Positions 18,401 to 59,700 are shown, counted from the first letter of the stretch. The stretch is DNA of 64,000 nucleotides from Paragordius varius (GCA_964247055.1 OZ176051.1:5766001-5830000); one strand, 5' to 3'. The notes: generated by a model from the letters alone, not told the origin. A program made the numbers and translations.

Positions 18401-20119
18401 AAATAATGTCCTCGACCTCCACCATTTTTATTTCTTCGACGCCTTCGTAACCGTATATAGTTATCGTCTGCTGCTCTGTTATTACCACCTTCATCATCAT
18501 CAATAAAATCATCTGTGTTGTTGTTGTTGCTGTCGTCGACAATTATGTTGTTGTTGTTGTTTACATCTTCTTCCTCATCGTCAATCACGTGATCATCTTC
18601 GTCGTCATGGAAACGGTCGTCGTGGTAACCATCTTCTTCATCATCATCATCATAATCATCTTCACACTCTTCATCAATCTCGTCATCATCATCTTCGTCG
18701 TCATCTTCGTCGTAATCATCTGCATCAGCGTCCTCTTCATCATCCATTTCATCATCATCGTCTTCATCGTCATCATCAAAGGCATCGGCGACATCAGCAT
18801 CAGCTGTGTTTGTAGTTACAGCGCTCGTTGCCATAGCAATGGCATCTTCTTCTTCATCGCGACTCAGGACATTGTTCACGGCAATGTTAATATCCAAATT
18901 CTATATGTGATTTGTAAATACACTAGCGTATATAAAGCATAATTTGTCTTGATATCAAAAAATGTTTTTTGTCGCTTTTTACCCACATGTTACCATGTAT
19001 GACATTGGCCAAAATGCCGGATTCTCACTGCATATGTGTGGTGTGCCAGACTTGGAATCTTTAATTTCACAAAATTTTCAAAACCAATGTCGCCCTGGAT
19101 AGGCGAGTGTTAAAGCAAGTAATAAATAGGAGAAAAGTAATTCTGTATATTTTACATGGGGTGGTGAGAGCAAAAGTTAAATAGCAAGAAAAAATTCCAT
19201 AAATTTATAATGCAACAAAAAAATGAGACTATAAAGTATATATTATATATTAACAATGTAGTAGGTAGAGGTTAATGTAAAATACATTTAAATTTAAACT
19301 ATTATGGATTTGTATTGAGTAAATATATGAATTAGATACCAAATAAAATTTAAATCAAAAACTTGCATTAGTGGAGATATAAAATGCGTAAAAAACGAAT
19401 GCGACCATTTTAATATAAATATACTCTACTAACTAAAATAAGTAAGATTAAAAACCTTAAAAATTATATTCTCCAGTAATATTACACAAAATAAAATACT
19501 TAAAACATTTTAAAAAAAGTAACAATATAATATACCGCTCGTTGTAATTCACGAATTATCACACCCCGCGATTTTCCTTGCAAAACATTTTGAGCCTCTT
19601 GTATCAATTCTTCAGGGACACTCGATGCAGGTATAATAGATCTTTGAAGCAAAAATCCGCTCGTATTTCTAAGACAAGTCGGTAAACGTCTAACACGCGA
19701 TTTACTTGAACTTGTGTTTGAAACATTCGATGTTTGTTTAACATCAGGTTCAATTTTAATTACCCTAAAAATTAAATTAAAAAAAACAACTTTTTTATAG
19801 TAGGTTTATTTTCTTGGATAGATTTTATTAGATAATCAATTCTGCATATAGTTCCATCCTAAATAAAAATTATGTGGATAAAATTGGTAGGATAAAAGCA
19901 AAAAATTACCTCAAATAAAAAAACAAAATGTCGTCGAGATATTAGACACTTGATTATTTTGTGTTTACTAATACTTTCAAAGACTTTTGGCAAAGAAAAT
20001 TGCTGTTTTGATATTTTCTGGCATATATCTTGTAATCTAAAGTGTAAACTAAAATCAAACCTATTATGCAAATCTTTTTCTGTTTTTGGGACCAAAAAAT
20101 TTGTACACACTAAACTCAT
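161..20119 (-). CDS. UBR5: E3 ubiquitin ligase UBR5/hyperplastic discs (EDD), multi-exon; 3' part including HECT domain lies beyond the left edge
   Basis: Spliced exons match UBR5 motifs in order: N-terminus ([37 protein letters not shown]); UBA domain ([50 protein letters not shown]); [16 protein letters not shown]; ALYW; [19 protein letters not shown]; [17 protein letters not shown]; [16 protein letters not shown]; UBR box; [19 protein letters not shown]; [24 protein letters not shown] at 20119. Confidence 0.95.
448..892. mobile_element. MITE family A (TATACCATTTAC-like termini, 21-bp subterminal repeats), intronic in UBR5
   Basis: Left tatatcatttacac, right gtaaatggtata; inverted cactcttaaacaattcaaatt / aatttgaattgtttaagggtg units; related copies at 6481, 9667 and 63457. 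Confidence 0.7.
1236..1279. repeat. (TA)n microsatellite at a UBR5 splice acceptor
   Basis: TA run directly upstream (minus strand) of tatag|atgag acceptor. Other (TA)n runs near 2050, 5243, 15283, 15445, 24519. Confidence 0.9.
3137..3715. mobile_element. piggyBac-like MITE flanked by TTAA
   Basis: TTAA|CATTTGG ... CGAAGTG|TTAA; homologous inverted copy at 48323-48830. Confidence 0.65.
3789..3948 (-). CDS. UBR5: UBR-box zinc-finger exon of UBR5 (absent from ORF track)
   Basis: AG/GT-bounded exon translates [49 protein letters not shown], the Cys/His pattern of the UBR5 UBR box. Confidence 0.95.
6481..6776. mobile_element. MITE family A copy
   Basis: tatacc ... ggtata termini; inverted arrays of cacccttgaacaattcaaatt. 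Confidence 0.75.
7133..7465. mobile_element. hAT (Charlie-like) MITE
   Basis: caggggtgtccaac ... gttggacactcc termini with gcggccc subterminal motifs; relatives at 28135 and 53039. Confidence 0.65.
9667..9950. mobile_element. MITE family A copy, degraded
   Basis: Same inverted subrepeats and the ttatgtgttttt / aaaacacataa inverted pair. Confidence 0.6.
12360..14297. mobile_element. Fold-back element (~1.94 kb) with TA target duplication, in a UBR5 intron
   Basis: TA|CAGTCATG ... CATGACTG|TA; outer arms (~12360-12960 vs ~13710-14297) are near-identical inverted copies; internal ~100-bp tandem units (caggtaaaaattgcggtttttaa); no ORF. Confidence 0.9.
14829..15059. mobile_element. Short palindromic MITE related to the 12360-14297 fold-back
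   Basis: TA|GAGTCATG ... GATGACTG|TA; shares tttggtaaagaa...aaaaaacaagagc..tatggta with the large element. Confidence 0.8.
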
Positions 20120-20215
20120 TTTTTTACAGTGGAATAAATGACTGTATGAAACTAATGTGATCGAATTCTCTAGAATACTAAAATTATCTATTACTTACTA
20201 GGTGGCCTTATATAT

Positions 20216-20453
20216 TGTTACATATGCAATTTTAAATATATATTTTGTATGTATGATATAGTTTTTAGTGAGATTTGCATCGTCTTATTTTTATATTTTT
20301 GTGTTAAACAACATATCCATTAGTTACTCAAATTTTATTTGTTTTATTTGATATCATGCAAATTATGATCACTTAAAAATATTATATAAAGGGTATAAAA
20401 AAATGAATAAGTATCTTTAAGTTTTACGATTTATACTTTTGTTACTTTTTACA
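20216..20453 (+). repeat. 5' LTR (238 bp, TG...CA)
   Basis: tgttacatatgcaa ... gttactttttaca; direct repeat of 24307-24521. Confidence 0.9.
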
Positions 20454-23400: not shown

Positions 23401-24306
23401 ACATTGATATAGCTGGACCAGTAGACGGGTATTTTTGGTTGTTGTTGATGGATAGCGCATCAAAATGGTCGGAAGGGTTCATGTTAAAACGGGTTACTTC
23501 GGTAAATATATTGCACAAACAAAAGGAAACCTTTGCCAGGTTTGGGTTTCCGGGGACGGTAATAAGTGATAACGCTTCTTACTTCAATAATTCGTGCTTT
23601 ATATCAACCCTGACAAACTTGGGAATTAAGCACGTGAGGGTAACCCCCTATCATTTTAAAAGTAATGGGATGGTAGAATGGTTAGTGGGGACCCTAAAAG
23701 GCAAGTATAGAAAAATCAAAAATTATAATATTACACTACAGGAAGCTTTTAATACTACCTTATGGTTACCGTAACTCAATTCATGCTACCATAAAAGAAA
23801 CCCCCTTTTAACTACTCTTTAAACGAGTATCCCAAACACCCCTGACCTGAATTAACACATCAACAACAGTCTTAGACGCACCCCGTCCGCGTCGTGAGTT
23901 TTCAATAGACCAACGCATAATGATGAAAAACGAACAAAGTCCTGGATGGCGAGCCGGCGAGGTTGTTGATAGTTGTCTTCTTTCGTACAGTGTGTGGGAT
24001 CAGGAAAACCAGAAGATGGTCAGAAAGCACGCGGACCAGTTGAAACACGTAGACCCACCCGTCAACTCAACTACACCGGTTACTCAAAACAATAGTAATG
24101 ATAGTAATAACGACAATAACAGTAATAATAATGATAACAGTGTTGACAATAATAGTAATGACAATAATAATGATAAAATAAATGATAATAATAATGAAAG
24201 TAATGATAATATTAATAGCAATAATGACAATATAAAATCCGCACGAGCGTCGTTACCCTGAGAAAATTCGGCGGAAGCCGGTTCGGTTCTCCTAAGGGTG
24301 TAGTGA

Positions 24307-24513
24307 TGTTACATATGCAAATTTTACATATATATTTTGTATGTATGATATAGTTTTAGTAAGATTTGCATTGTCTTATTTTTATATTTTGTATTGTGTA
24401 AATAAAACCTTATTATTTGATATTATGCAAATTATGTTTTCTTAAAAATAGTTTATAAAGAGTAGAAAAAAACGAATAAATATCTTTAAAGTTTTACGAT
24501 TTATATTTTTGTT

Positions 24514-24521
<8 letters not shown>
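24307..24521 (+). repeat. 3' LTR, diverged with an internal deletion, running into (TA)n
   Basis: Alignable to the 5' LTR along its length; followed by a TA run to ~24583. Confidence 0.9.
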
Positions 24522-24587
<66 letters not shown>

Positions 24588-25093
24588 TTTATAATAGAGC
24601 AATCATATTCTGATTGTATCTATTATAAATCTCTAATAAATAGCCCGCTAAAGAGATTTTAAAAGGGGCCTCTGAAGTTTTTAAATATAAAGATTTGGTT
24701 TTTAAGCGCTTTCATTAATTGTTTTTAGGTTATCCAAATGATTTGGGATACTTTTAAATATAATATATATATTTAATATTTTCATGGAATGAGCTTTTAA
24801 GTTTTTGAAGATATCCACAAATAAATTATTAGACACACATTTCTTTCAGCCCTTTGATTCAAATAGGTCGTTAATGAAACCAGGTCTGTTCAAAATATAT
24901 ATGAAAATATGGAATGATACTATTGCATTGCACCTACATAAAGTCTATGAACCAAAATATTCAAAAAACTAGCTTGATATTACTTGCACAATGTATACAA
25001 AAAAATAACATAACGAAATATTTAAATTCCGATGAAAATGTCAGAAATCCCATGCTTTTTGTTTAGAGGCTTTGATATAAAAAAGACACTGTG

Positions 25094-30006: not shown

Positions 30007-33000
30007 ATGGAATATATTCAATCCTTATATTATAAATATTGCAAGGAAAACAATCTACCGATTGGGAATACTGATCTATTGAATTTTGCCAATTGTCCTG
30101 ATTTTATGAACTATTTGGATGATAATGACCCATTAAAGAACTATCGACAACAATTTAATATTCCTGATATAACAACCCTTGGTAAAAGTCAACAAGGTTT
30201 TAATTTAATTTTTACAACTTGTATATATATATATAATTTTCTTCCCAACATTATAACCAGATCCGACTCACTACATTTTACTGATATAGCTAGCCTTCAT
30301 CTTTGTTTTTTGTTATAACATTTGAAAAATTAATGAATTCGATGTATAAGTATGGGAAGTTTTCCGTATTTTTATATAATTAACATCTGGTTTCACAATA
30401 CAATACATAACCTTTTCTCTAAAAGCAGTTACATCTTAACAGAAATTACAATTTTTAGTAGATGATTATCATATAGTGTTTACCATATCTTTTATTCGGA
30501 CATTTATCCGAAATTTGGTACTTTAAACTGCTTTTTATACTCCATTATTTGGGGGTAGTTTTATAAACCTGATCGATTGAAATTTAAATATCTTAAAAAG
30601 TATTAAAGGTATTAAGCCGAATAAAATATGATTTCTTTGGCCTTTTGGCGAATTATACAAAAACAATTTAAAAAATGTAAAATTCTAAAAAAATATTTTA
30701 AATTTTTTTGCCGCCATTTTTTTCTATAATTTTTTTTAAATCGCTAATACAGGCAATAATTGTTTATTACGGTTAGAAAATTTCAATAATTTAAGCCTTC
30801 AGGCTACATTTTAACTCAAAAACTTGATATATTTTGATTTTATAATCAGCTGTTCGTTCTAGAGGTCACAAACACTGTAAAAAATATAACTTTCATTATC
30901 TAATGCATGGGAACAATATTAAATAATTAAATTTTAACTAAAATACTTTCAAAACTGTAGTTTATTTACCAAATTGAGCTGTGTGATATTAAACTACCCC
31001 AATATGTAAACTAGCACAAAAAAGTGAAAAGGTAATGAAGTGTTAATTAATTTTCATTATGGAATTTATTTAAAACCAATCTTGTGAGATAGCTATTGTT
31101 TTTATGGTTTTTTACATATGTTTGATAAAGTATCAAATTTTTATTACCATTTAAATTTTATTATTGTAATTCTAAACTTTTTGATGTAATTACAATCCCG
31201 CTGGTGGTTTCAATAAATAACATATTTACAGTAATTCATAGAAATAAATACTGTATTTCCAATATGTGTGGCATTTTTTTACGTTTACAAGTTGTTTCAG
31301 CTGTATATTAATAATTACATGTACATATATATTTATCTGTACATATATGTCCCTTTTCGGTACACATATATGAGAGATACAATAACATTGCAATATGTCC
31401 CTACTCGCTACATATCTTATTAGGGAACTCATTGCATATGTGTTGTGCATACTTCGATAATTAATTTTTTAAGTTTGATATATAATTTTTTTTATAAAAA
31501 ATAGGTTTTTATGAATTTATTTAAGGAAGGAGATATTTAGAATTTATGTATAGCTTTTTTGAAGAAGATAGTACAGCTGAAAGTTTGCCATCAACATCAG
31601 ATTCAAACTATGGGAACACAATAATAACTCAGACTCCGAGGATCAAAAAAAGTATTTTTTCATCGTCATTTTAGGGCAGTATTGGTAAGGTGACCAGATT
31701 TTTTGAAGGAAAAAGCGGGACAAATCTGAGAAGGGGGAGGGTCATTGGGGGGTACAACCAAAAATTTTTATACAAAAAATTTATTGTAATATATTTTTAT
31801 TTTTAAAACAAATACATTGTAAATATAAAAAAATTTGTACTTTACAGGTTGTTTGTACCTTATTCAATAAATTTACTGCACGAACAAAGGGTGAAGTGAT
31901 GTAATATTCTAGAAAAAAATAATAAAGACGAAATCATCACAAAGTGCGCTGGGTGATGCAAGAAGCGGCACAAAAAATATTTTTAACAATTTAGCGAATA
32001 ATCTTAATCAAAACATTATTGGCAGATACACAACGCTATTCAAACAGCTACTGATTTGTTACCCCTGGATGTGAAAAATATAGATGTTAAAATGCTTGGA
32101 TATTGTAGAACTGTTGATAAGCTCTTTTGCCAGCGATTGAAATATTTATAAAAATGTGATCTCCTAGAATCCTATTTTTTATCACAGAACAATGGTCAAA
32201 ATTCCAAGTCAAAAAAGGAAAATAATTTTATACCATTACCTAATCGCAATATTATAAAGCATCCAAAAAAACAAGGCTTAATGAATAGCCAGAATATAAA
32301 AATGTTTTATACAAACAGAAACGATTATTTGGTAGACAAGACGGTGCACAATGACACTTTTTTATGAAGTCTCATTGTTAAATAAATATATTGAATGAAA
32401 ACTTATATTATGGACAACAGAAAAAAATACGTAGGATAGAAATGGTTAATAATCATTTTTAAACAAATTATGTTCCATACAATAATATTTTAATTGTAGA
32501 ATTTGCATTATCTTTACCTGAACCACTGCTATTGAACGCGTTTTTCCACAGTAAATTAAGTAAGGACAAGGAATCAAATTTAAATGTTGAATAAGTGCCA
32601 TTTTATGTGTTTAAATATAATTTGAAAAATTATGAAGACTTATACAATATTTTAAGTAATTTTGTTTATTTTTTAACATATTTATAAAAATATAAGAAAA
32701 TATTTTATTCTTTGGTATAATTTTTGTTTGAGTGAATGCGTTTTAGCAGATTGTCATCATTTTTTAGTCTTCACAAGAATTTGTCAAATTATATTTGACA
32801 GATAAAACGGCCTTTAAAGGTTCAACAGTTAATTTTGATTTTTCCGATGTCCACACCTGATTTACTGTGGAAAAAACGCGCTCAGTAGCAGCGTTGGTTC
32901 CAGGTAAAGATAGTAAAAATTCCACAATTATTTTTCTATTATTGTATGTATTATAGTTGGCTTCAAAATGATGAAATATTTCCAACCATTTCTTTTCTAC

Positions 33001-36000
33001 CGTATATTTTTTTGTCCATAATTTAAGTTTTTCATTATTAATATATCTATTAACTAAGAATTTTTGGGGACAGATATAATCAAATGATTTTTTAACATCG
33101 CACCAATTAGATTTTGGTTTTGATGTTATCCAATGAAAATGATCAATTTCATTGAATTGCGTCGTCCAGTCTTCCAAATAATCTTTACAGTTTGTATAAA
33201 ACATTTTTATATGGTACAGGATATCTTGGCGATTTATTAAGCCTTGTTTTTCTAAATTATTTATATTGCGGATGGTTAATGGTATAAAATTATTTTCTAA
33301 CCTTTCTTGACATTGGAATTATGTTCTAACTTAATTGACTAATTCAATTGCCGAAATTTTGTCACCTTCTATCAATTTAATAACATTTTGAAAGAGAGAA
33401 GCTTAATTATGTAGGGACTCTAACCATATTTTTGAAGAATCACTTTCAAAAAATTTTCCAAAGTTGTAGGACATTTGTCCTGTGATAAAAAATAGGATTT
33501 TAAAGGATCATACATTTTTAAAATTCTTTCGATAGCTGGCAGAAAAGCTAACCAACGAGTTTTACAATATCCAAGCATTTTTTGATATTGAACTTCTGCA
33601 TTTTCACAGAATTCCTTAAGCGTTTCAACGCGTACCCTGTGTACATAAAAAAGATATATTTTAATAACTAAATTTTCCACATCTAGGGGTAACAAATCAG
33701 TAGCTGTTTGAATAGCGTTGTGTAAATGCGCTGCACACCCAACGCCAATAATGTTTTGATTAAGATTATCTGTAATTTATGAAAAATATTTTTTGTTCCA
33801 CTCCTTGCTTTTCCACCGAAGTTCGTAATGGTATCAGAGCAATATGCGATGATTTTGTCTTTTAAATTATTATTATCTTAAAATATTCATTATTGAAGTA
33901 AAACTTATGTCGGAATTTACACCGGGAAGCGAAATAAAATCTAAAATTTTAATTACTCCAGTTTCTGGATCAAAATATCTTATTAAAGTGGGAAATAATT
34001 TTGTTTCCTTGTGAGATGCATCAAATTATAGCGATATGAAATTAATTTTCAGCAAATCTTTTTGTATTTCAGAAAATGCATGTGGCGAAAGGACATTGCA
34101 TTCAATGGCTTCAGCCCTTGTACGGGCACATGTAAATTTTTTATTGAATAAGGTGTGAATAATCTGTGAGGTACAGTTCATAGATCTAAAGGAATGATTG
34201 TGATTAACGGCGTGAAAAGATAACACGCCCTCAGCTAGTGCCACATTCTTTTTTTCCTCTCCAAAAGCGGTTTTTCGAAAAAAATCGCTCATTTTGTAAG
34301 ATGATGCCGCCATATCTAAACATTTTATCATGTTTCTGTGTTTCCATATGCTTTGTAATATCATGCTTGCCGCCATGTGCTAGGGTGAATTCCCCCTCGC
34401 ATATAAGACATTTAACAGATGATTCATTCTTCGTTTTTTTGATAAAAGGTAAATCTTTCATTAATTCATCGTTAAATTTATAACCTTGTGCTCATATTTA
34501 TAAACTACTATTAGTATAATAAATATTATATTACCTTAATTTTCTGAAATAAACGTGTAAGGTACCGATTTGTGGTATTAATTTCTCTTTTTAATAATGT
34601 TGGCAAGTAATAAAACTAAAATATTAGTATAATAAATATTATATTACATTAATTTTCTGGAATAAACGTGTAAGGTACCGATTTGTGGTATCAATATTTA
34701 ATCTAGAGATTTAGTAGGAAGGAAAGTGTATAATCATTTAATATAAATTCGAAAAAATTAAATAATAATTTAAAAATAAAAAATTTTAATTTAAAATTTA
34801 TATAGATATTAAAGATATTTAATGATAAAAAATTTAAACGGATAAAAAAAATTTATTTGTATTAAAAATTTTTTTTTTATATAATCGTGAAAAAGCGGGA
34901 CATTTTAAAACGTAGCGGGACGCGGGACAAAGTGTGAAAAAGCGGGACTGTCCCGCCAAAAGCGGGACGTCTGGTCACCTTAAGTATTGGTGTAAAAGAA
35001 CATCCACCTTTTTTCATTACACATGAAAAACCAAGTCGATGGTTTTCGATTTCTTAGATATGTCAGAATCAAGCATAAATCGATTGCGACAAAAGTTATG
35101 CGAGGAGAGTCAATGATCATGACTATACAAATCCAAACAGATGATAATTTGAAATTACAGAAATATCTCACTGATATCATCAAAGATAAGAATCAAATAT
35201 ATTTGGAATTAACATAAATCGCATATGTGCGCCATAAAACTGGTATAAAAATTAAATTATACAAATCTAAATATTGTTTTGATTAGATTTCGCATGATGT
35301 ATTGGAGCGTTATCTTACACAATATAATCATCCGGTGAAATCACTTTCCTGGCATCTTTAAGAAAACTGCTAAACCTGCAGCGTCATAACTGCCGATTTT
35401 TATTTCATACTTTACCACCCCTAAAATAAAATAAATAGATTACCGGAAATTCCAATCATACACAATAAAGATACGTTAGGAGATTTGGGTCGTCTTTTTA
35501 TAACCACAGATTTTCCCGAGGGGGCCCACCCATAACAACTTTTAGTATTTATATTAAATCCACATTCATCCACATAAAAAAGAACCATGTATAACTGATA
35601 TTATCAATGACAATAATCATATTTGGAGGAAATTTAGAAATATATTCTGGAAAACTTCACCGTTTCCTGACCCACCCTTTGAAAATGTTTGAAACACATG
35701 AATATGACATACAAAAGAGGTTATTTGAACCCATACATCGTAAAACGCCCCTAAATTTAGACAAACGATTTCAATATGCCAGGGAAGTATTACAAAAAGA
35801 CATGGATCTTTTTTATGTGGATGAATGTGGATTTAATATAAATACTAAAAGTTGTTATGGGTGGATCCCCTCGGGAAAATCTGTGGTTATAAAAAGACGA
35901 TCCAAATCTCCTAACGTATCTTTATTGTGTATGATTGGAATTTTGGTAATCTATTTATTTTATTTTAGGGGTGGTAAAGTATGAAATAAAAATCGGCAGT

Positions 36001-39000
36001 TATGACGGTGCAGGTTTTAGCAGTTTTCTTGAAGATGCCAGGAAAGTGATTTAACCGGATGATTATATTATGTTAGTTAACGCTCCGATACATCATGCGA
36101 AATCTAATCAAAACAATATTTAAATTTGTTTATACCAGTTTTATTGCGCACACATGCGATTTATGTTAATTCCAAATATATTTGATCCTTATCTTTGATG
36201 ATATCAGTGAAAATTTTCTGTAACTTCGAATTATCATATTTCCTCTTTCGGCCCTGATTAGTGATGATCAACTCTCCTCACATAAACTTTTGTCGCAATT
36301 TATTTATGCTTGATTCTGATCTATCTAAGAAATCACAAACCATCGACTTGGTTTTTCATTGTGTAATGGAAAAATGTGGATGGCTTTTTATATCATCTTT
36401 TATATCAATACTGCCCTAAAATAACGATGAAAAAATACTTTTTTTGATCTCCGGAGTCTTAATTATTTAGGTGTTCCCATAGTTTGAATCTGATGTTGAT
36501 ATCATATGTACTATCTTCTTCAAAAAATTACATAAATTCCAAATATCTCCTCACTTAAATAAATTGATAACAACTTAATTTTTTATAACTAAAATTATAT
36601 ATCAAACTATTAATTATCGAAATATGCACACATAACATACTGATTAAAACCTAATTTTTATAAAAAAATTATATATCAAACTTAAAAAATAAATTATCGA
36701 AGTATGCACAACACATATGCAATGTTATTATATGAAATGTAGCGACATATTTTAAATATTAAAAATATATTTATCACAATTTAGAACTTGAAAACAATAC
36801 ATCAATCTATTTAAATGGTAACTCCCTCGGATTGCAACCAAAACAAGGCATCGAAAATTTAAACAAAGAAATACAAAAATGGGCTGAATGGTTTATTTTT
36901 ATTAAAAAAAACATATTTAAATCAAATATAATAAGCTGAACTATCCAGTTAATATTTACGTAATATATATCAATCTCGACATAGGGGTTCTCTCGGCTAT
37001 TTTCATCAGATGTCTAATCAAGATCTAAAATGGACGGAATGCGAAGAAAGCCTAAAAGAGGGATGTGCTTATCTTATAGGTAATTATTTAAACATGTGGG
37101 TTAATTAGTTTTAACTAAATTTTTTCCTATCAACGATTATAATTAATTATAAAAAGCATCGTGCCTTTTTAGTATAATTTATAGTTAATTAAGAATTTTC
37201 GCATAACCTAAAAAATATGATCGTTTTCATTATAGCCTTATGATATTATACATTATATATATTAATGAAGAAAGATCGATATTAATGCATCTATAAAATT
37301 ATCTTATTAAATATTTTTTTGAAATTTACAACATTGGATAGGACCGGAACCGGCTCGTGTTATAGTTTAAACCCGTCTGTTTAAAAAATTAAACCAGGGT
37401 TTTTTTTCCACTAATCACACCAATTTCTTCTCAAATCTCAGAAATATTGGTTTGGTCTCGTTAACCGAAATTATTTTAATAAATACCAAAATAGTTTATA
37501 AACAAAACAAGATCTTCACAGTGTAAATCCCCAAACTTTCTAAATTTTTTGTAGTTTTGTTGCATTTTTTTAAAAAACATGATTTTACGGACTTTTAATA
37601 TTTTAGAAATGTGGAAAAACTCATTTTTATTTGTGGTGCGCACAAAAGTATTTTTTGGAATTTTTAGTTAATAACACGACAAACAGTTCAAAAAATATTT
37701 AAAAAATATACTTAACTAACAACACTGAAAACAAATAATATAAAATTCATTCTACTATCCATATATACCCACCTATATTATATATTAATTATTGAACTTT
37801 ATCAAAAAAAATATTTCATTCGTGGCTATAAAAATATATAATATATTATCTAGGAGCTGAACCCGATGATGTTGCCTGTCTCAATGCATTAACTGTCAAC
37901 CTTCATCTTTTAATGGTTCCATTTTTAAATATAATGTTACAGAGTTTCTTTTGCCTTCAAATATTTCTTATTTAAGTTCCTTTTTAAATTTTAATACAAT
38001 CTAATTGTTTTGGTTAATAGATATAACTATCCATAAAAACATCATAAAAACCAAAAATTGTTACATTTTTAGCAAAAAATTTTACAGATAATTATCATGC
38101 AACTGAATGTAAAAATATAATTATTAATATAAGTATTAGGATAAAATATAAAAAATTATAACGTTTTTCGGAAATATCCTAGATCCACACATTCTGCATT
38201 TAAAAAACTATCGGAACCGTTTTATAACCATGTGTTGTTTTGTAATTTTGTTCAAAAACGGTTTCAGTTATAATTTTAAACTATATTTGCTCTTTTTAAG
38301 AAAATTTTTATCTAATTTACAACAAATTTTATTTATTCAGTCGTAGTTTCTTTGTGTTTTTATGAAAACGCGTTGTATGTTGATTTTCTAAAGAATTCCT
38401 AGTTGCATGCATGCGATTTTTTAAATAAATATTAATATAACTGTTATAAATACAGTATGCATTTTAATGATTGCTTATTCCACATCAGTGATACTCAAAC
38501 CGCGGCCCGCGGGCCGCATGCGGCCCTAAGAGTGCTTTAAAATTGCCCTTTAACACATAAACGAATTTTCGATTATTTTTCTATTAATTTATTTTCTTTA
38601 GATTTCATTTTGGTATTTTTTTTTTCCAATTCGATATGTAGAAAAATTTCCCTACATTAAAATAATTATAAAATTTTTGCACACGTTCTTTCTGTATTCT
38701 ATTTTCTTTATTTTGAAATTTTTATTGCATTCCTTTTTTGTATTTAAGCAAGCCTTTCACCCAAACTTGCATATACATAATCTTTTCCTAGCTATCCTGC
38801 CTCATTTTATATAACTCATTCCCATAAAATATTTTTCAAATCCACATCATTAAATTTCGACCTGTTTTTTTATAGCATATCAAATATTCCTATTTTTTTG
38901 AAAAAATTTACATAATATTTAACCATAAATATAAAGGATGACATCTAAGGCTAAAAAACGTAAATTATCCGATGAAAATCGCCCTTTAAAAAGTATGGGA

Positions 39001-42000
39001 AGAAAAATTCTTTCTCGTTTAAAATAAAATTGTTGTTACCAGCCTTATATGTAAGGACAACATAATTATAAAAAAATACAATATTGAAAGAATTTTACAT
39101 TCCATTTTGCTCATAAATTACCAGAAAATGAGGAATAACGAAAAATATAAAAGGATTAAGGAATTGTACAAAGAAAAATCTATTATGTCCATAGCTTTCT
39201 CCCAGGAAAAAGTTGTATAATTAGCTTCGTATGAAATTTGTTATATTTTAGAAAAATTATGAAACCGTTTACTGATTTCCAACTAAAAGAATGTCTAATA
39301 TTTGGTTGCACTTTTTTATTTGATAAATTCCATATAAAGATCAAATCATGAGGCAAATTAAAAAACTTCAACTTTCTGAACATGTGCTGGACGCATTGAA
39401 GATATGTATTAATATCTTTTTAGCGATACATTATTGGCTCTGAAAAACTGCAAATATTTTAGTATTGATTCTAGCACTGATATTAGTACAACATCTTAAT
39501 GTGTGCTCTTTGTAAGATTTTGCAACGGCAACATAATCAACGATAAATATTTAAAATTTTTACTAATGAATAATACCACGAAAGGAAGTTATTTTCTCGA
39601 AATAATTAAAACTTTTTTCGATAATAATGGTATATCTATGAAAATCGGTTTCGATCTGCACAGATGGCTGTCCCTCTATGATTGGAATAACCAAATGATT
39701 TATTCCTCTTTAAAATATTTTATCCTTTCACTGCTTTATTCATCAAACTTGGTTTCGCGTGTAAAAGATGAATCACTCAGTTCAGTAATATAAACGGTTG
39801 TGGATATAGTTAACCACATCCGTGGCAGAGAATTCAACCGCCGTAAATTCAAAAACCTTCTGAAAGATATCCACAGTGAGTTTGAATATATACTTTTGTA
39901 CATTGCTGTGAGATGGCTAAGCCTTAGCAAAGTACTGAATAGATTTTTTGTTTTAAGACATGAAATTTTAATATTTATAAAAGTTAACAGAAAGTTTCAC
40001 GAGGAAATTTATAGTGACATATGGTGGGTTTTATTAGCCTACCTTTGCGACATTACTTATGAACTTTTTCAATACGTCGTCAAGGAAGCAAAATAATAAC
40101 CCAATTTGCTAATGAAATATATTTAAAAAATTAATAATATAAACTAGATTTTATAAATTAAACACTTCTGTATTCAACTCTTAAAACGATTCATGAAGAA
40201 AATATGGAATTTACCGCGGAGATTAATTTAATAATATCTAACATTTTTATCTAATGAGTCAGTTTCAAAAATTAAGATATATTAAATATTGCCTAAAACT
40301 CGTTGAATATCCATGGCATATGGATATATCCAGCATTAAGCGACTTGAGCACTTCGGTTTTGATCAGGCGCCTATCATTAAAGATGTAGGTTTTAAAAAT
40401 TCCAATTTAAATAGTCAAAGAGAATCGTAGAGAAGAAAGATATGTAGAGTTTTGGCAAGATGTGCCAAATAAATGTGAAAATATAAAAAAATGTACTGAA
40501 GTTATCCTAACTCTTTTTCCCTGAACTTAAACGTGCAAGACGTCATATTCAAAAATAAAATATCTCAAGAATACATACAGAAAGTGCTTAACCGATGTTC
40601 ATATGGACGACGTATTAAGATTGGCCTGTCATGAGGTGAAACCAAATTTGTCAAAAAATATTGGTTAATATCGAAAAAAAAATTTTTATCAAAATATTTT
40701 ATTTAAACTAAATGGTTAACCAGTTTTTAGCTGGATTTACATGCGATCCGCAAAAAATTCATTGTGCTGATTTATAGTATAAATATGTGCATATGTGTTA
40801 AATAGCTATGGAATTATTATAAGGGAATGGCCCTCGAAAAAAAAATATATTTTATTTGGCCCGTCAAATTTTTTTGGTGAGTACCACTATAGTTGGTCCA
40901 TTCGCAGCACACTAGTTTATGGAAACTAAATTGTGTGAGTAACGACGAGGGTTTGTATTGTAAATGATGTGGAAATCGTCGTAAAATATTTTCACGATAT
41001 TTACTATGATTCCCTTATCATAAAACAAAAAATGTTGAAAACACAACTATTTCTTACATTATTTTGTTTGTTGTTTTCCATAGACTACCGTATTGCAAAT
41101 TGCCCAACTATAGTGTGAAATATTAAAATGCATATCTCAAAATAAACAAAAAAAATATTTTTGCTGCTATTTATTTTTCCAAATTTTTCGCTGCGAATAA
41201 AATAAAACTAATGAGCCTTTTTTATTTTATAAAAATATTAAGCATTTACAATATGTTAATTATGTAATTTTGTGTAGATATCATTTTATCGGCCAAATGC
41301 CAAACGTTACAAAATTTTGGTTGAAGATAAAATATTCCCATCAGATTTTTATGCCATAGAATCGCAAATTCGGTTTCATGGTTACGATCCGGATAACGCG
41401 TTAATTATACTTAAACCACGTGAGGTTCTAACTATATTTTTAAAAGAAGATATTAAAGTATATATAATTTTTCGTTTTGAATTGAAATTTAAACAGTTTT
41501 TCAATTTAATTATGCAATCTGAATCTAAGGAAAACCCAGATAAATATAAAAAAAATATTCGTTATAGGGGGAACACATTTTTCGGACAGAAGATATTTTA
41601 CACACAATCTCACAACTTGGTGACGAAATTGCATTGATATTCTTAAGTGCGGTTCAATATTATAGTGGTCAGTTGTTCAATCTAAAGGCCATAACAGCAA
41701 AGGGAAGAGAACATGTATGATTGATAGCATTGATATATATATGTATATATGCAAAAATTTAATATAATATTATTGACTCTTTTATGGTTTAAATAACCAT
41801 AAACTAGTCGAGAAATCTGTTACGGTTCTTAAATAACGCAGGTATTTAAAGGTTTATTTCATACAATATAAATCCTACCCTTCATAAAAATGGAAATTAC
41901 ATATAAATTGAATAATATCGTTATTTACAATAACTTATGATGAAATCTGGAAAGGGCACAGTACTCAACTTGTGGCAGTTATTAATAGCCCTTAAACAAA

Positions 42001-43575
42001 TCCATGAGTATAGTTTATTAGTGCTATTTCTAATATTTAGGTTATAAAATTTAAGAGATTTAAGTTAGCTATTATGTATAAATTATTTTAGGGATGCTAT
42101 ATAGGTTGGAACTTAGCCCATGCAATCGGTAATGTGCCATTAAAACTCAATGAATGGGACGTTGATTTTGCCGTTTGGTGCTCATATAAGGTTTTACATT
42201 TCTTTTATTATATTCATTTTCTAATAGTTTCGATTGAATCTTTTTTTCCTACTATATAAAAATTTGTTTGAAAGAAATTTTTTAAAAAAATTATTTTTAT
42301 TTATCAGTATCTGAACGCAGGCCCTGGAGCCATAGGCGGAATATATGTTAATCCACGTTATAAATACAACGATTTCCCAAAATTTCTTGGCTGGTGGGGA
42401 CACAAATGGTCAACCCGCTTTAATATGGATAATGGTATGCTTATGTTGTTTATAACCATTTAGTTTTTTATTTTGATTTTATAGGAAATATTTATAATTT
42501 GTAGTTTTGGATCCTGAACCAAGTCCAAACATTTATAAAATTAGCAACAGTCCAGTATTCTATGTTAGCACCCTAAAAGCTTCACTAGATGTATGTTCTT
42601 TAACTTATTTAAAAATATTTTAGCCCAAAATTAATAAGGGTTGATGGAATACAAAGTTAATGTTTAATAAGGATGGTCGAATTTTTTTAATGATAATCTA
42701 AGCTACTAATTACTTTAGTTATCATACACTACTTGAAATGTGCATGATTATCGATAGAATGCGTGTTTCATTTTAAATATTTTTTACGATTAACTGTATT
42801 AATATATTAATTTGGGTTCTCTAAATTTAGCGGTTTTTTATAAACAATAACTCAGCAGAAGTAAAATGAGTATAATGAGTTTTGTTAACAAATTTCTTAG
42901 ATATTCAAAAATGCCACCATGGATTTTATTGTTCAAAAATCAACTATTATAACCAGCTATTTAATCACTTTACTTTCGCAATCACCGAAGTCTAAGGTAT
43001 ACACCTATGAAATATTAAATAACAGACTTTGTATAACATAATTACACCAGCGGAACTGAGTGAACGTGGCAATCAAATATCAATTTTACTCTTGCACCCT
43101 GAAACTCATGTCAAAACTATTCACCATTCGTTATTGTCTCAAGGAATATTGGTAGGAAATATTTAATAAATTTATTTAAGACCGAAAATTTTACATATCT
43201 GGATTATGGTGAAAGAGTGAGTCTAAGACTAAAACTGTCATTATAAGTTAAAAAGTTAATATGTTATATAATTTTACGGTTATCATGCTGATTTTATAAT
43301 TATTCCGTTAGTCATTTTATACATTTTCATTAAACTTAAATGCTAGGTTTAAAATTCAAAGTTATTTAATTATCAAAAACAAGATGTTGAAAACTTAATA
43401 TAACGCTTATAAACCAAATAATTTGAAATACTTTTTATATAATTTTAAGGTGGATTACAGAGAACCCAATGTTATCCGAGTTGCTCCTGCCCCACTATAC
43501 AATACCTATAGAGATGTTTACGTATTTGTAAAGAAATTTCATGAAATACTGGACGACATTTTAAAAATACAATAA
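30007..43575 (+). CDS. KYNU: Kynureninase (PLP-dependent), multi-exon
   Basis: Exons: [17 protein letters not shown]; [13 protein letters not shown]; [12 protein letters not shown]; [23 protein letters not shown]; [10 protein letters not shown]; [10 protein letters not shown]...WCSYK|YLNAGPG; GWWGH; [12 protein letters not shown]; [18 protein letters not shown]; TAA at 43573-43575. Confidence 0.96.
31375..36752. mobile_element. Fold-back derivative of a Tc1/IS630-type DDE transposon; left arm interrupted by a hAT
   Basis: 31375-31685 plus 34991-35590 are the inverted copy of ~35800-36752; ORF 35607-35984 has [10 protein letters not shown] and the arms carry a DNAPIHH remnant. Confidence 0.85.
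31686..34982 (-). mobile_element. hAT DNA transposon (Tip100/Zaphod-like termini), decayed transposase
   Basis: TIR TAAGGTGACCAGA / TCTGGTCACCTTA; perfect 8-bp TSD AGTATTGG (31678-31685, 34983-34990); aagcgggac subterminal repeats; BED finger (CLIC...KHMETQKH), TRW motif, C-terminal [13 protein letters not shown]. Confidence 0.95.
38486..40889 (+). mobile_element. Decayed hAT (Charlie/SPIN-like) transposon in a KYNU intron
   Basis: cagtgatactcaaaccgcggcccgcggg start and ggcccg...gtgagtaccact end; fragments [35 protein letters not shown]; no matching TSD found. Confidence 0.8.
40885..41115. mobile_element. Small MITE
   Basis: cactatagttgg ... ccaactatagtg inverted termini with further imperfect pairing. 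Confidence 0.6.
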
Positions 43576-43826: not shown

Positions 43827-45069
43827 ATGGGAGAAGTTCAACCATTAGTAGTTGATAATGGCTCGGGTATATGTAAGGCCGGATTTGCGGGTGATGATGC
43901 ACCCCGGGCCGTTTTCCCTTCTATAGTGGGTCGGCCTAAACACAAGGGTGTCATGATGGGTATGGGACAAAAGGATTGTTATGTGGCGGACGAGGCTGAA
44001 GCCAAACGTGGTATCCTTACGTTGAGATACCCGATTGAACATGGCATAGTTACCAATTGGGATGATATGGAAAAAATTTGGCATCATACTTTCTACAATG
44101 AACTGCGTGTCGCACCGGAAGAACACCCGGTTTTGCTTACGGAAGCGCCCCTCAACCCTAAATCTAATCGGGAGAAAATGACGCAAATTATGTTTGAAAC
44201 ATTCAATACCCCGGCATTGTATGTAGGTATTCAGGCTGTGTTGGCCTTGTATGCGTCTGGTCGTACGACAGGTTAGTTGTTGTAGTCACTTGGACTTTGA
44301 GAATAATTAGGCTAATTTTATCAAAACTTTTTTAATTTAATAATCATGATTTAGGATACATAACTTAACGGATTTATTTAATATTATAGGCTTGACATTT
44401 GATTCTGGTGATGGTGTTTCCCACACCGTACCGATTTACGAAGGATATGCCCTACCGCATGCCATTATGCGTATCGATTTAGCTGGGCGAGATTTGACCG
44501 AATATTTGCAGAAAATTTTGACTGAACGTGGTTACTCATTTACTACCACGGCCGAAAGAGAAATTGTGAGAGATATAAAAGAAAAATTATGTTATGTGGC
44601 CCTTGATTTCGAAGAAGAAATGAAATTGGCCGAAACATCGTCTGAAATTGAGAAAAGTTATGAGTTACCCGATGGGCGTATCTTAACAATTGGCAATGAG
44701 CGATTCCGTTGCCCTGAAACATTTTTTAAGCCATACTTTATTGGTATGGAGTCTGGTGCGATACATGAAACGACTTATAATTCCATTATGCGTTGTGATA
44801 TGGATATCAGGAAAGACCTGTACAATAACATTGTATTTTCTGGCGGTTCGACTATGTACCCCGGTCTTAAGGAACGTTTAGAAAAAGAATTACGAGCTCT
44901 AGCTCCTCCCACCATGACTATTTCGGTTTTAGCTCCACCCGAAAGGAAATTTTTGGTATGGATTGGCGGTTCAATTTTGGCTTCACTTTCGACCTTTCAA
45001 TCTATGTGGATCAACAAGGAAGAATATGATGAAGTTGGACCATCCATTGTTCATAGAAAATGCTTTTAA
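43827..45069 (+). CDS. ACT: Divergent actin, 374 aa, one intron (44272-44389)
   Basis: Exons 43827-44271 and 44390-45069 join as [12 protein letters not shown]; full actin from DNGSG to SIVHRKCF. Confidence 0.98.
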
Positions 45070-48909: not shown

Positions 48910-51900
48910 ATGGATAATTCCCAAAAAATTACAGTAGCGATTATTGCATCTTCAGCATGCGCCGCGGCACTTGCAACTTTTTATTTTTTGACCAAAATTA
49001 AGGAAAAGGATGAACAAATTTCCAGATTACAAATTGAAATTAATGATCTAACCCGGAAGATACATGGTAACCTGATAATAAAGTAAATAAAAAATTTATT
49101 AATAGTAATCTTGAATCAAACGGAAAGCTTCCAACACCTAAGCTCCGTAGGGGAGTTAGATTTTCTGGATCGGAACCTCGTTTGAATGGATTAAGACGCA
49201 ACTCGTTGAGAAAGTCTTCTGAATGTCTTGCCGATGATATGACAAGTATTTATTCGGAAACTACAAGCATTGATGATGAGTTTTATGATACCATAGAAGA
49301 GTATAATTTTTTTACTAAATTATTTAACCTTAAAATATAATGCAATTTAAACATTAAACCCCATAGGTTAACAAAAGCAGATTCTTGTCAAATAATTATA
49401 GATGATGTCAAACATTTGGAATTTAAAGGCGATGACTATTATATTGAAGCCTATAACTTATTATCACAATATGAATTTACAGTAATTTGATTACATAATG
49501 ATAGGTTCCAGAATACATATGTATGAAAGCTAAGTTTAGTCGATATAGAGCCAGAATGGAAGAAGAAAACAATAATATGGATGGTGCTAAACATTATTAT
49601 GTTGAAGGTTTTTTTCCAATTTTTGCAATATGTTGCTAACCATTTTCATTGTTTCACTAGTTTTTAATTGTAGTAAGGCATTAAGTTCCACATCTATGCA
49701 TTATTCATTAATCATCTTTCATATCATATATTAAGTCAACGTTTTTTATAATTTTTTTTCCTGTTTTATAGCTCATAATCATGCCAAACATGCCGAACAA
49801 ATTGATCCCATCAACCATGAAGTTCAAAAATGGTATACTTTTTGGCATATATTTTTTATCAAAAGCACCATAAAAAAATTTTGACACTAAATATACTTTA
49901 ACTATTTTTGATATCATTTAATTGTTACCTTAAAACACTGTAATTTGGATTATTTCTTATAGCGAAACGAATTGGGTATAAATTGTTATTAAAGTGTGAG
50001 TACAGTTTTTTATTGATTAATGCTAGATAGCATTTACAGCAAAGAGCAATATAATCCACTCTATGGTGCATCTAAAAATTTATCTATAGCTATTAGAAAT
50101 TCTTTTTTTATGGTAAACTATAGTAAAAGCTATCTGGCAATATTTAATTTAAAAACTATATGTTTACCATTACCCACACTTGTTTACAGTTAAAATTTAA
50201 ACCATACAAATTAAACTTGAATTCAACAATACTTTTTTAAAAATCAACATTACTATTATTCTGAATTATATAATTGGGTGTATTAACAACATGCACATTA
50301 TTTTTCAAAACTCGTTGGTTACATTTTTAAACAAGATTGAAAAAGTATGGTTGCCCTTTTCAAAAACAATAATTCTCTTCTAGCATTTACGTTTTGTCTG
50401 TATAATATCATTTTTTTCAACTTTTATAATTTTTGTAAAATAGGTTAGCAATTACACTTAGCGATGTGTCGGAATATGGTGACCACATCAGTCTATCCGA
50501 TCGCGTTCATAATGCCCTTAAAATTAAGGCTTATGCTGAGGCCTGTCTCATATCTGATCCATTTGATCCCCTAGTCCATTATTTATTGGGTCGATGGCAT
50601 TTTAAAGTACTTTAAATTATAAAATTATGAAATAAATGGAAATAAATTTAAAATTTGTAATGGAAAAGTTTTGGGATTTTATTAATTTTAATATACGATA
50701 ATAATTAACCGAAAAATTGAAATCATATTAATATAATGTATATTGTGGTTTATTCAAGTAAAGTAAAAAAATATAATTTGTGTTAAATTCACCATTATTA
50801 TAAAGATATTATTATATTAAATTATTTTAATGTTGGTATATATCTTCTTTCACTTATATAAAACAACGATTTTTGGTTTAAACGCTTTTTCTTTAGCTAA
50901 TTTTATATTAATCCCATATGTAGATAGCATCCCTTAATTGGTATGAATTAAGGACTGCCCGTGCTTTTTGTTCAGACTTCCCAAAATCAACCTATGAAAA
51001 GGCCATGGAACATTTTAGAGAGGTTAAAAAATAAATATACAATATGAAAATTAATTTTTAATATTTTTGAATGTTTTTGTTAAATAAATGACAAAAGGAT
51101 TGAATAACATTGAATAGTTTTTATGTAATCCATATTTTGTGTCCCATACCCATATTTTTATTTAATGTTATGTATATTATTATTATACAGGCTGAACGTA
51201 TACAACCAAACTATTTCATTGGCAATATGTTGTATATTGCTAAGGTTTGCATAATTCCTTTTTTTCTATCTTTTGCCTTTTTTTGTGCATATGCACGAGA
51301 TAAAAATTATATTTTGTAATTTTAAAATAATATACTTTTTAGTGTTACATTGCGCTCAAGGATGAGAAATCACGCGCTTTACATTGGCTTAAGAAAGCAC
51401 TTGATCTCCGAACACGAAATGCTGATGTATATATTTTATTTAAATATAAAAATGTTTACAAATGTAATTTTGCTGTTACTAAAATCATATAAAAAGTGGA
51501 TATTTTAAAAGCCGAAACATTGGTTTTTTAGACACTGTTAAGAAACCAAAAAGGGTAATGTGAGTAAAGTTGTTAAAATTTTTTCAATGCGATATTAACC
51601 TTATTTTTTTACAAATAATTTTTAATATTTCATATTAATAATCTATTTTGGATTTTTAGGGAAAAAAATTATGTTAAATTTGTAAGCTCTTTACATTAAT
51701 CCTGCAAAATTAAAACCTTTTAAAATGTGAAACCGAAGTCATTAAAAAACGATATAACTGAAATTAAAGTTATTTTTCATGTAATCCGTTCTCCCTGGTA
51801 ATTTTTACTAAATAATCATATCATTTATATATTTTTTAAATTATACCTTTTTTAAGAATATTTATTTTAAACTTTCTGGGACAGGAAATAAAATTAGTTG

Positions 51901-56200: not shown

Positions 56201-56782
56201 CATATGGCTCGTGGTAAACACTCTGGTAGCATGTTATACTTTTTGCGAGATATCGTATTTATCCGTTTATTTTAAAAGAATAAGATCATTTTATAGAGGG
56301 TAGAATTTTTAATATTTGGATTCCACATCTATACCTAACTTTAAAAGAATATATTTATGATTTAACCATTCATTACCTTTTCACTTTTTTGTCCTTGATT
56401 ACAGCTCAATTTGGTAAATAAACTACAGTTTTGAAAATTATTTTAGTTAAGAGTAACAATCACTGTTCTCATGTATTAGATAAGATGCTTATTTTTTATA
56501 GTTTTAAGACTTCTATAGTCAAAATTGGGAGAGCTGCAAAATATGATAGAAACGAACAGCTGATAATGAAATAAAAATATATCATGTTTTTGCTTGTAAA
56601 GTGAGCCTGAAAGTTCTTAAAGTAAATTATTTACATTTTTACCTAAAAATTGTAAATATTTTTATAAAATTACTCATAGAGCCCCGAACCAAAGGGACCT
56701 TAATGATCCATCACATTAGATAAATATATATTTTATTTTTCACATATATTTATATGTTTCTGTATGGTTTCGTCTGATAACC

Positions 56783-59700
56783 ATGAGTGTCAACTGGGTG
56801 GAATTTGTAAAATTACTTTCCAAAAAATTAATCAATCAACACAATGAGGAAAAAGTTAAAGTAAAATAAATTTCTAGATTACATCAGTATTGAAAAAATT
56901 AGATGCAGTACCGATGTCATTGGATATCTTGAAAGTATATTGAATTTAATTTCAAGGAAACCAAAATCGGGAAAATCGTTAATGATCATAGAAAATCGGA
57001 TAATAGTATAATAGCTGATTTTTCCAAACGGCTCGTTAAAAAATGGAAAGATATTGCATCTGCTGAATCCACACAACAGGTAGGTTTTTGTAATTAAATA
57101 ATATAGGGTCAAATTTTAGTGAGTAAAACAGAGAAACATAATCAACCAAATAGTGTAAATATAAGGGATAGTGACCACGATATTTACAATCCTATTGATA
57201 TACATCAAAAATCTTTAACCATTCAAACGCCATACATTCCGACTCCAATCAATCAATCTTTAACATTATCAGACCCTAAACAATATAATTTAAATTCAAA
57301 AAATAATATCGAAACAAATATTCAAGATTTTTATTTGCAAAAGAGCAAAACCAGAACTCAAATATACTCTGGTAAACGGAAAAATATTACTATTAACCAT
57401 CAATTTGGACTGAATAAAGGTAACAAATAATTTTTACGAACATTTCATTTGTATATTTTGCCTATTTATGATATAAGAAAAAATTATGTATTTGCTCTTT
57501 AATGAATTCTAACGAACCGGTAAAGTATGGTTTTCGTTTATAAACTTTTATTTTTTATTCTTCAATATAAAAAATCTACATTTTATTTTATAAATGATAA
57601 ATTTGATATATAAATGTATCATTAATTTTGTTGCATAACTCTAATTTTTTTATCAATTAATTAATAAATCTTTTTTAGGTGTAATTTGTCAGGATGATCG
57701 TATACCTACCCTATATTCCTTGTGCATTCAAACTCTGATTCAAAATATCGATTCTATCGAATGTATTGGAACCATTCCGGTTGAAATAATTGCACCAGTT
57801 TTAGCAAAGTGTTCCCCAATACAATTATATAATTTGGAAAATTTTAATCCTGTACATAATTACAAATTATTTGATTAAAACTTTCAAATACTCTGTTGTC
57901 AAAAAATAGAGTCATCAATAATGGCTATCGTAATCTTTAAGTTAATTTGTTAAGGGAAAATTATTAATATATTTGTGGACCACTTTAAAAAGGTGAACAT
58001 TTAAAGAAATTTTATTGTTTATGGTCCATATACACTTATTTTTTTTCTTCTTTTAAAAAATATGACTTGTTTTCCATTAAATATTGCCAGATTGTATTTT
58101 AATAAAAAAAATTTTGACTGAAAGGAGAAAAAGGCGGAAAAAATACATATGCAAACAAAAACTTTAAGCCAATCATATTTCTTTTTACTGTAAAGACAGT
58201 ATTCATGTGTAATTTATCTTTAATTTATCTCAAAATATAATTTATACAGAAACTTATCGATGATACCGATACTTATTGGGAGCGACACAGTTTTCGCGAA
58301 TTCAAGCCAGCTCATCAAAAGCGAATGCAACGTTTAGAAAAGAAAACTAGTCATAAATCATCACAAAATAAACGAGTCAAACACAACAGTATAAAAATTT
58401 ATTGTGAATAAAATTTAAAAATAGAAAATAAAAATCTTTTCATTATTTTGGATGTCGTTTGATGATAAATGGCTATGAATATAATGTTAATTGATTGGTT
58501 CAATTATACAAAATAATTTAGGTAACAATATTAATATGCTAATTTTTTTTGTATTATATTAACCGTATACCATCATTTTTATCCAATTATAACTAAAATC
58601 ATATACAGTATTATTAACATTGCTAATTTTTCATTGATTATTGGCAGATAGCCCATACAGCAAACAGTTTTGTATTGGCTTAAATCTATTATTTTTGATT
58701 TTTTGGCTATTTACACGAATAATCATGCTTTTTGCTCTAAATGCTTTGCAATATATGAAATCAACTAGCAATGTATAGTCATTCACACTGTATATAGGAA
58801 AACATAAAAGGAAAAATTTTCAATTTTTTTACACAAACAAACCCCTCTTAAACTTTTATAATCAAAACTTTATAAACATAGGTATCGCTTACCTCCTTTG
58901 AAAGGAGAAAATAGCGCACAAAGGTGATATTCATAAATAAACATAGGTCAGGATACCCAACAAAATCAGAGTGACAATGACGATAGTTTTGATGATGATG
59001 ATGAGGGAAGTGTGAGTTGGCGAGAATTTTATTTGACTCAAATGGATGAACGTGATGCTCGCCTCCAAAAAATTACGGCAAATATTACGGCCTCAATGGC
59101 TCGTTCAACTCCGGGTCCCCGTGTTAAATTGGCTTTCATGTCGGGCCAAGCTAAACCACCGCGAAATGTGTTGCGAAAACAACTCTTGAACTGTACTACC
59201 GCTCCAGGTATGACATTGTAATTTAACAAATGGTGTGATTTATACTTAATAAATGGCATCTATAAATAAGTTGTGCATTTTAAACTTTTTTATTCTATAT
59301 ACGCATACTTGTTTGGTTATTTTATGGAGAATCTTTTCGAAAAAAACATGAAAATACTACAATGTTTTTCAACTAAAATCTAATATAAATTTAGGTTTAA
59401 AACCTTTATCTCTAACGTCAATTAAACCGCTTAATAATGGTTTAACAGCCCAATTAAATGGGAAGGCAATTAACAACAATGCATTGAACCATTTTGCTAA
59501 CTCTAATTCTATGAGCGGAAGTAGTATACGAATTAGTGATCTAGAGGTAGACCCCGAAAAATATGTCGTCCCAAATGGTAAGTTTAATTTTTAAGTCCAT
59601 ATTTTTGTCACAAATTATTTTTGATTTTATTATTTAACCAACATAAAATGAAATTGAGTTAATGCATTATGTTTAATTGTTCCAATAATACCGATTTTAC

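Follow-up and report, generated by a model that had tools for sequence, protein, structure and literature searches.

Can an animal splice out introns of fewer than 30 nucleotides (nt) from the very transcripts that also carry introns of several kilobases (kb)? The question is raised by a 64,000-nt stretch of DNA from the hairworm Paragordius varius (GCA_964247055.1 OZ176051.1:5766001-5830000; the whole stretch is referred to here as the window), in which the original prediction placed eight ultra-short spliceosomal introns in four genes, UBR5, KYNU, RMDN and ELOA, together with kb-scale introns filled with transposable elements (TEs). The gene names proposed there were borne out. UBR5 is identified by its EDD UBA domain (Pfam E = 9e-16) and zf-UBR, ELOA by its Med26/TFIIS-N and Elongin_A domains (Pfam), and RMDN by later exons that match Pfam RMD1-3, while the identity of KYNU follows from its similarity, exon by exon, to the kynureninase gene of another hairworm, Gordionus sp. 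m RMFG-2023 (hereafter Gordionus), in a translated comparison (loci L001 and L003). In our opinion, the short segments are very likely genuine GT-AG spliceosomal introns, which form a discrete class of 22–29 nt in a nematomorph related to Gordionus; this conclusion is drawn from genomic sequence.

All segments were recomputed with their flanks, and three-frame translations were made of each, with and without the segment. The coordinates, termini and lengths proposed earlier stood throughout: read on the coding strand, all nine segments, if a 17-nt variant in ELOA is included, run from an initial GT to a final AG. Their lengths are 26 and 24 nt in UBR5 (minus strand), 29 nt in KYNU, 23 and 23 nt in RMDN, and 23 (or 17), 22 and 27 nt in ELOA. 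The statement that every segment except the 24-nt one breaks the frame or contains stops was likewise correct: the segments of 26, 29, 23, 23, 23 (or 17) and 22 nt cause a frameshift if kept, and the 24-nt segment of UBR5 alone is both in frame and stop-free, with the eight others either shifting the frame or carrying stops. The segments are AT-rich, as had been claimed, but “almost pure AT” was a slight overstatement, given a guanine-plus-cytosine (GC) content of 9–25% against a window mean of about 27%.

The first line of evidence indicating that these introns are real is the position of the 29-nt segment in KYNU. The exons that flank this segment are conserved with Gordionus, yet they lie in different frames, and the Gordionus gene carries a 999-nt intron (GTATGT...CCTAG) at the identical codon and in the identical phase, in an alignment without any indel (the junction reads ...SQSPKSK / TLYNIITP in the window and ...TSSFYK / KYFEIITP in Gordionus). 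All 11 intron positions of KYNU are common to the window and Gordionus, whereas the lengths of the introns diverge widely, in both directions (Table 1). The alignment extends to the 5' end of the gene, where exon 1 (approximately 30115-30174) corresponds to the first coding exon of Gordionus KYNU. The divergence in length is well illustrated by the surroundings of a small exon at 37853-37891: the Gordionus intron upstream of it is only about 44 nt long, and the spacing of conserved blocks there is 255 nt, versus 4,190 nt in the window.

The second line of evidence comes from ELOA. A protein search with the C-terminal exon of this gene returned Gordionus Elongin-A as the top match (CAK9293016.1; isoform XP_065325143.1), and the annotated Gordionus protein was mapped back onto its gene (locus L004, 21 kb). 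Intron 2, of 22 nt, lies exactly at the position of a 6,425-nt Gordionus intron located between ...LEILK and ETKIGK... (L004 10180-16604), and the exon that follows it matches positions 18-51 of the 52-position Med26 profile (Pfam). Intron 1, of 23 nt, is at most one codon away from a 41-nt Gordionus intron that follows ...NDTSK (L004 10082-10122); the acceptor positions of the two introns are the same, and exon 2 encodes 19 amino acids (aa) in both species. The orthologous intron position is thus hit by all three micro-introns for which a comparison can be made (29 versus 999, 22 versus 6,425, and 23 versus 41 nt), and from the numbers of introns and codons we estimate the chance of such a coincidence at less than 1 in 100 per intron.

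Removal of the ELOA segments also restores a recognizable N-terminal domain. Measured against a profile of the N-terminal 110 residues from 110 Elongin-A homologues, the N-terminus spliced at 23, 22 and 27 nt scores 79.2 bits. The score falls to 29.4 bits if intron 2 is kept, in which case the protein is cut to 45 aa, and to 6.2 bits if the N-terminus is left unspliced. With the 17-nt variant of intron 1 the score is 75.4 bits; the 23-nt reading is better by 3.8 bits, and the 17-nt alternative is disfavoured. Intron 3, of 27 nt, is flanked by the TFIIS-N domain upstream and, downstream, by a 107-codon open stretch that is in the same frame and contains a conserved QKSKTRTQIYSG motif. Because two stops are found between these conserved same-frame parts, something must be removed there. 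Jaillon and colleagues reportedly noted in 2008 that Paramecium introns of a length divisible by three tend to contain in-frame stops; the 27-nt intron of ELOA follows this tendency. Taken on their positions and on the restored domain, the tiny introns of KYNU and ELOA are very probably real.

Table 1. Ultra-short introns and other features of the window, with the lengths of the corresponding Gordionus introns (lengths in the KYNU series are approximate)
Feature	Coordinates	Strand	Length in window	Phase	Length in Gordionus	Remarks
UBR5 intron 3	19765..19790	-	26 nt	2		T-rich GTTGTTTTTTTTAATTTAATTTTTAG; T-rich 3' half
UBR5 candidate intron 1	20037..20060	-	24 nt			GT..AG; adds 8 residues (FDFSLHFR) if kept
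KYNU intron 1	30182..36784	+	~6.6 kb (6603 nt, approximate)			transposon remnants inside; borders approximate
KYNU intron 2			94 nt		about 459 nt	
KYNU intron 3			774 nt		44 nt	
KYNU intron 4	37895..41277	+	~3.4 kb (3383 nt)		about 170 nt	between small exon 37853-37891 and exon from near 41278
KYNU intron 5			143 nt		49 nt	
KYNU intron 6			377 nt		80 nt	
KYNU intron 7			117 nt		287 nt	
KYNU intron 8			70 nt		about 50 nt	
KYNU intron 9			310 nt		38 nt	
KYNU intron 10 (micro-intron)	42997..43025	+	29 nt	0	999 nt	GTATAC...AACAG; orthologous intron position
KYNU intron 11			298 nt		about 2316 nt	
Actin gene	43827..45069	+				one 117-nt intron at ~codon 150
RMDN intron 1	49083..49105	+	23 nt	2		frame logic alone
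RMDN intron 3	49482..49504	+	23 nt	0		frame logic alone
ELOA intron 1	56855..56877	+	23 nt	0	41 nt	donor alternative at 56861, giving 17 nt
ELOA intron 2	56935..56956	+	22 nt	0	6,425 nt	between ...LDILK and ETKIGK...
ELOA intron 3	57080..57106	+	27 nt	0		two in-frame stops

The best-surviving alternative, which we nevertheless consider improbable, is that some of the gene models are wrong, so that distant splice sites or a downstream start codon are used, or a segment is kept as coding sequence. It would apply above all to the 24-nt segment of UBR5, to RMDN intron 1, and to where precisely ELOA introns 1 and 3 begin and end. Several results speak for this alternative or weigh against the interpretation of the segments as introns. 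First, open frames of 30 codons or more that abut another such frame, with no more than 10 codons between them, form 487 pairs on the two strands; a GT..AG bridge of 18–32 nt was found in 46 of these pairs, versus 39 expected from composition (rank 11 of 256), i.e., with no enrichment. About 9% of abutting open-frame pairs can thus be bridged by a chance GT..AG of this size in a window of 27% GC; when segments were simply tallied by their terminal dinucleotides, noise drowned out any signal. It follows that the bridging of two frames does not by itself count as evidence of a micro-intron here, that the RMDN and UBR5 cases that depend on the frame only are individually weak, and that, there being no enrichment independent of homology, support has to come from homology.

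Second, the 24-nt segment of UBR5, being in frame and without a stop, could simply be translated; at its N-terminus the protein has diverged too far for a match with human UBR5 in PDB, and this candidate is without independent support. Third, alternative borders exist in ELOA. Besides the 17-nt version of intron 1, another GT..AG, of 30 nt (57090-57119), also removes the stops of intron 3, and the latter intron has no counterpart in Gordionus, the exon of which is continuous there. Fourth, the N-terminal exons of UBR5 and RMDN are without a Pfam or PDB match: the UBR5 N-terminal open reading frame (ORF) and RMDN exons 3 and 4 gave chance matches or none in PDB, the exons flanking RMDN intron 3 have no match of their own in Pfam or PDB, and Pfam searches with exon pieces of 21–49 aa mostly gave no match. 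Fifth, a branch-point or polypyrimidine signal is not demonstrable from eight sequences. Finally, searches of protein collections with actin, the UBR5 exon-5 region and full-length Gordionus ELOA, and an exact look-up of the actin exon-1 ORF, turned up neither a protein nor a transcript of this species.

These points are countered in part by the genes themselves. The borders of the KYNU intron and of ELOA introns 1 and 2 are fixed by the orthologous positions and the profile score. In UBR5, the UBA exon (19536-19764) lacks a start codon, and joining exon 2 straight to it, i.e., skipping exon 3, produces GGT AAT TAA, an immediate stop, which supports the 26-nt intron; the frame is kept only via exon 3 (19791-19858), with the use of a 51-nt intron (19859-19909) and the 26-nt intron. 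In RMDN, intron 3 is the sole GT..AG that bridges its two open frames, and intron 1 is the sole GT..AG combination found that preserves the frame between the ATG exon (48910-49082), which encodes a 21-residue hydrophobic segment, and the next exon. This layout of a start codon and a hydrophobic exon fits what we take to be the N-terminal membrane anchor of RMDN2 and RMDN3. By reading-frame logic, the 26-nt intron of UBR5 and both 23-nt introns of RMDN are probable introns, and the 24-nt segment of UBR5 is a candidate. The claim that tiny and multi-kb introns occur within one gene is well supported on its tiny-intron side in KYNU and ELOA, is plausible for the 26-nt UBR5 and the RMDN introns, and did not find independent support for the 24-nt UBR5 segment.

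It is very unlikely that the segments stem from errors of sequencing or assembly, or that they are mutations of pseudogenes undergoing decay. Indel errors do occur in long-read assemblies of AT-rich genomes; however, errors of long reads are typically homopolymer indels of 1–2 nt rather than GT..AG insertions of 22–29 nt, three of the segments fall on conserved intron positions, and the neighbouring exons are undamaged, with conservation along whole genes. Weaker still is the proposal that the segments are removed by something other than the spliceosome, either by somatic DNA elimination, as in ciliates, or by an endonuclease and ligase, as in tRNA and XBP1 introns: the introns are indeed shorter than well-studied animal spliceosomes accept, but their ends are invariably GT..AG, they are homologous with ordinary long GT..AG introns of Gordionus, and spliceosomal introns of comparable size have been described from dicyemids, myxozoans and ciliates (PMC13644364; PMC5014332).

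If the segments are spliceosomal introns, the major (U2-type) spliceosome would presumably excise them from RNA. Recognition might proceed by intron definition with minimal signals, namely GT followed by A or T at the 5' end and A or T followed by AG at the 3' end, perhaps with a branch A located about 7–9 nt upstream of AG. The 5' ends of the eight introns are GTA or GTT, with GTA in five and GTAAGT in none, a sample too small for a logo; the 3' ends are TAG or AAG in seven introns and CAG in one. By eye, an A is present at position -8 in six of the eight introns, which is not significant in sequence that is about 37% A, and TTAAT-like motifs are seen in several of them. A clear T-run is found only in the 26-nt intron of UBR5. 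Since introns of 22–29 nt occur beside long ones, the machinery must cope with a branch point only about 12–20 nt away from the 5' splice site as well as with long introns. SPF45-dependent splicing of short introns, which involves truncated polypyrimidine tracts and a modified 3' splice-site step (bioRxiv 10.1101/784868), is a possible mechanistic lead.

How, then, do the tiny introns relate to the longer introns of the same genes? Introns of 22–29 nt account for 6 of the approximately 26 introns of KYNU, RMDN and ELOA, the others ranging from 66 nt to 6.6 kb. The two sizes are separated by a gap, in that the next smallest introns of these three genes measure 66–70 nt; UBR5 has the 51-nt intron mentioned above. 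In this window-scale count of three genes, the tiny introns are not the dominant class, and the median is not below 30 nt. Seven of the eight lie within the first few hundred bases of the coding sequence. The same pre-mRNAs would accordingly carry tiny introns, ordinary introns of 51–700 nt, and kb-scale introns bearing transposons, and it may be that some ancestral introns shrank by deletion and others grew by transposon insertion.

The original prediction attributed TE-filled introns of 2.3-6.6 kb to the same genes as the tiny ones. This part of the claim is upheld by KYNU, in which intron 1 contains a hAT dimerisation domain (32767-33204, minus strand) and a remnant of a DDE_3 transposase (35607-35981), and intron 4 reaches 3.4 kb. 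It does not extend to RMDN and ELOA, the largest introns of which measure about 0.6–0.7 kb inside the window, where no kb-scale TE-filled introns were found in either gene. Nor does it extend to UBR5: the long terminal repeat (LTR) element there, together with a reverse-transcriptase ORF, lies just upstream of the start codon of this gene and outside any of its introns. The element in question is Ty3/gypsy-like (20900-24300, plus strand) and comprises a Gag-like ORF with a zinc knuckle, RVT_1 and an integrase core; the separate reverse-transcriptase ORF is at 25289-25756 (plus strand). An Rfam scan of the window gave no hits.

To our knowledge, animals were for a long time believed to lack introns shorter than 30 nt. 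A recent survey of 51 metazoan genomes found them only in myxobolid Myxozoa and in Dicyema and tied them to compaction in these two small, highly reduced parasite groups (PMC13644364, Mol Biol Evol, 2026); Nematomorpha are absent from the main text of that paper. The word “intron” is absent from the main texts of the Gordionus genome paper and of the comparative paper on four hairworm genomes. A literature search found no link between hairworms and intron length, the Acutogordius/Nectonema genome paper being outside its reach. Of the precedents given in the original prediction, dicyemids and ciliates are apt; the myxobolid Myxozoa had been overlooked (PMC13644364).

Each of these systems resembles the window in some respects and differs from it in others. 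The introns of myxobolids (Henneguya salminicola, Thelohanellus kitauei, and Myxobolus spp.; PMC13644364) were likewise validated by conserved intron positions. However, tiny introns are the majority there (median 22–27 bp) and TE content is described as relatively low, whereas in the hairworm window they are a minority beside TE-bearing introns of kb size; moreover, myxobolids are Cnidaria, a lineage unrelated to the ecdysozoan worm studied here. Dicyema japonicum (PMC6736024; summarised in PMC13644364) resembles the window as a parasite with introns of less than 30 nt at conserved positions. Dicyemids, however, are spiralians whose genome is reduced and whose introns are predominantly short, unlike the repeat-rich window, where long and tiny introns share a gene. 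Ciliates have a narrow class of GT-AG introns of about 15–30 nt with a high AT content, similar to that of the window: introns of Paramecium and Nyctotherus are about 25 nt long (PMC5014332), and 15–16 nt is the length cited for Stentor in PMC13644364. These protists differ from the window in that essentially all of their introns are tiny and do not form a separate class beside long ones. Human ultra-short introns of 43–65 nt (PMC4463651) are rare and about twice as long as those of the window.

The closest annotated relative, Gordionus, belongs to the same phylum and has the same intron positions, yet none of its examined introns is shorter than 38 nt, and it has 6,425 and 999 nt where the window has 22 and 29. 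Gordionus has small introns of its own, of 38–49 nt, four in KYNU and one in ELOA; the KYNU positions in question are occupied by introns of 70–774 nt in the window. The identity of the tiny intron is not conserved between the two species. Furthermore, the window ELOA gene has introns of 27 nt, about 307 nt (57372-57678) and about 690 nt (58332-59024) at positions where the exons of the annotated Gordionus gene are continuous (L004 18811-19266 and 19563-19979). These three window-only introns indicate that the presence of introns, and not only their length, differs between the two hairworms.

We lean, with less assurance than for the introns themselves, toward the view that Nematomorpha may be a third independent animal lineage with introns of less than 30 nt, in which these introns form a discrete, often 5'-clustered minority in a large, repeat-rich genome, with kb-scale TE-filled introns in the same transcripts. 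What would be new is not the kind of intron, since ultra-short spliceosomal introns are known, but its occurrence in a further animal lineage and as a minority beside kb-scale introns. If this is true, extreme shortening of introns is uncoupled from compaction of the genome. A macroscopic ecdysozoan with a TE-rich genome that splices introns of 22 nt and 6.6 kb out of one transcript would show that an animal spliceosome can come to accept shorter introns even where the genome is not reduced. Hairworms would offer a pair of related species for studying this change, one intron being 22 nt long in the window but 6.4 kb long in Gordionus. The finding would also have a practical side. Gene predictors and aligners with a minimum intron of about 20–40 nt miss such introns and would systematically break hairworm gene models. 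We speculate that hairworm annotations, low BUSCO scores (71.6% for Gordionus; Gordionus genome paper) and claims of gene loss may be affected and need rechecking.

The relationship to Gordionus is documented by actin. The protein encoded by actin exon 2 is 99% identical to a Gordionus actin (protein P0001), other actins in the protein search being at most 80% identical. At the DNA level, the actin coding sequence is 78–80% identical to that of Gordionus, and nothing is alignable outside exons. Because 99% identity of the actin protein is accompanied by only about 80% identity of the DNA and by a differing gene order, Gordionus is a related species and not the same one. The divergent parasitic lineage suggested originally is fittingly a nematomorph, most likely a gordiid. 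An origin from a dicyemid, an orthonectid or a myxozoan is rejected, given the actin match and the intron positions that KYNU and ELOA have in common with Gordionus.

Several minor observations on the four genes and their neighbour should be mentioned. Two further candidates for tiny introns in RMDN, at 50435-50461 and 51316-51342, were rejected, as their flanking frames are not conserved exons. The RMDN-like protein (48910-49303, plus strand) contains the sequence DDEFYDTIEE, which we assume to resemble a FFAT-type motif, as in RMDN3/PTPIP51. Exon 5 of UBR5 (18379-18900, minus strand) encodes, directly after the UBA domain, a run of about 110 residues rich in Asp and Glu, followed by an Asn-rich stretch; the acidic run is presumably much longer than the acidic patch of human UBR5. 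The actin of the window is divergent, only about 79% identical to typical actins. Its Gordionus counterpart is intronless and exists in two identical copies, oppositely oriented and separated by about 30 kb, in addition to a third actin of 360 aa (L001 10001-11125, L001 12585-13667, and L002 10001-11125). Kynureninase adjoins the actins in both species, in an inverted relative orientation.

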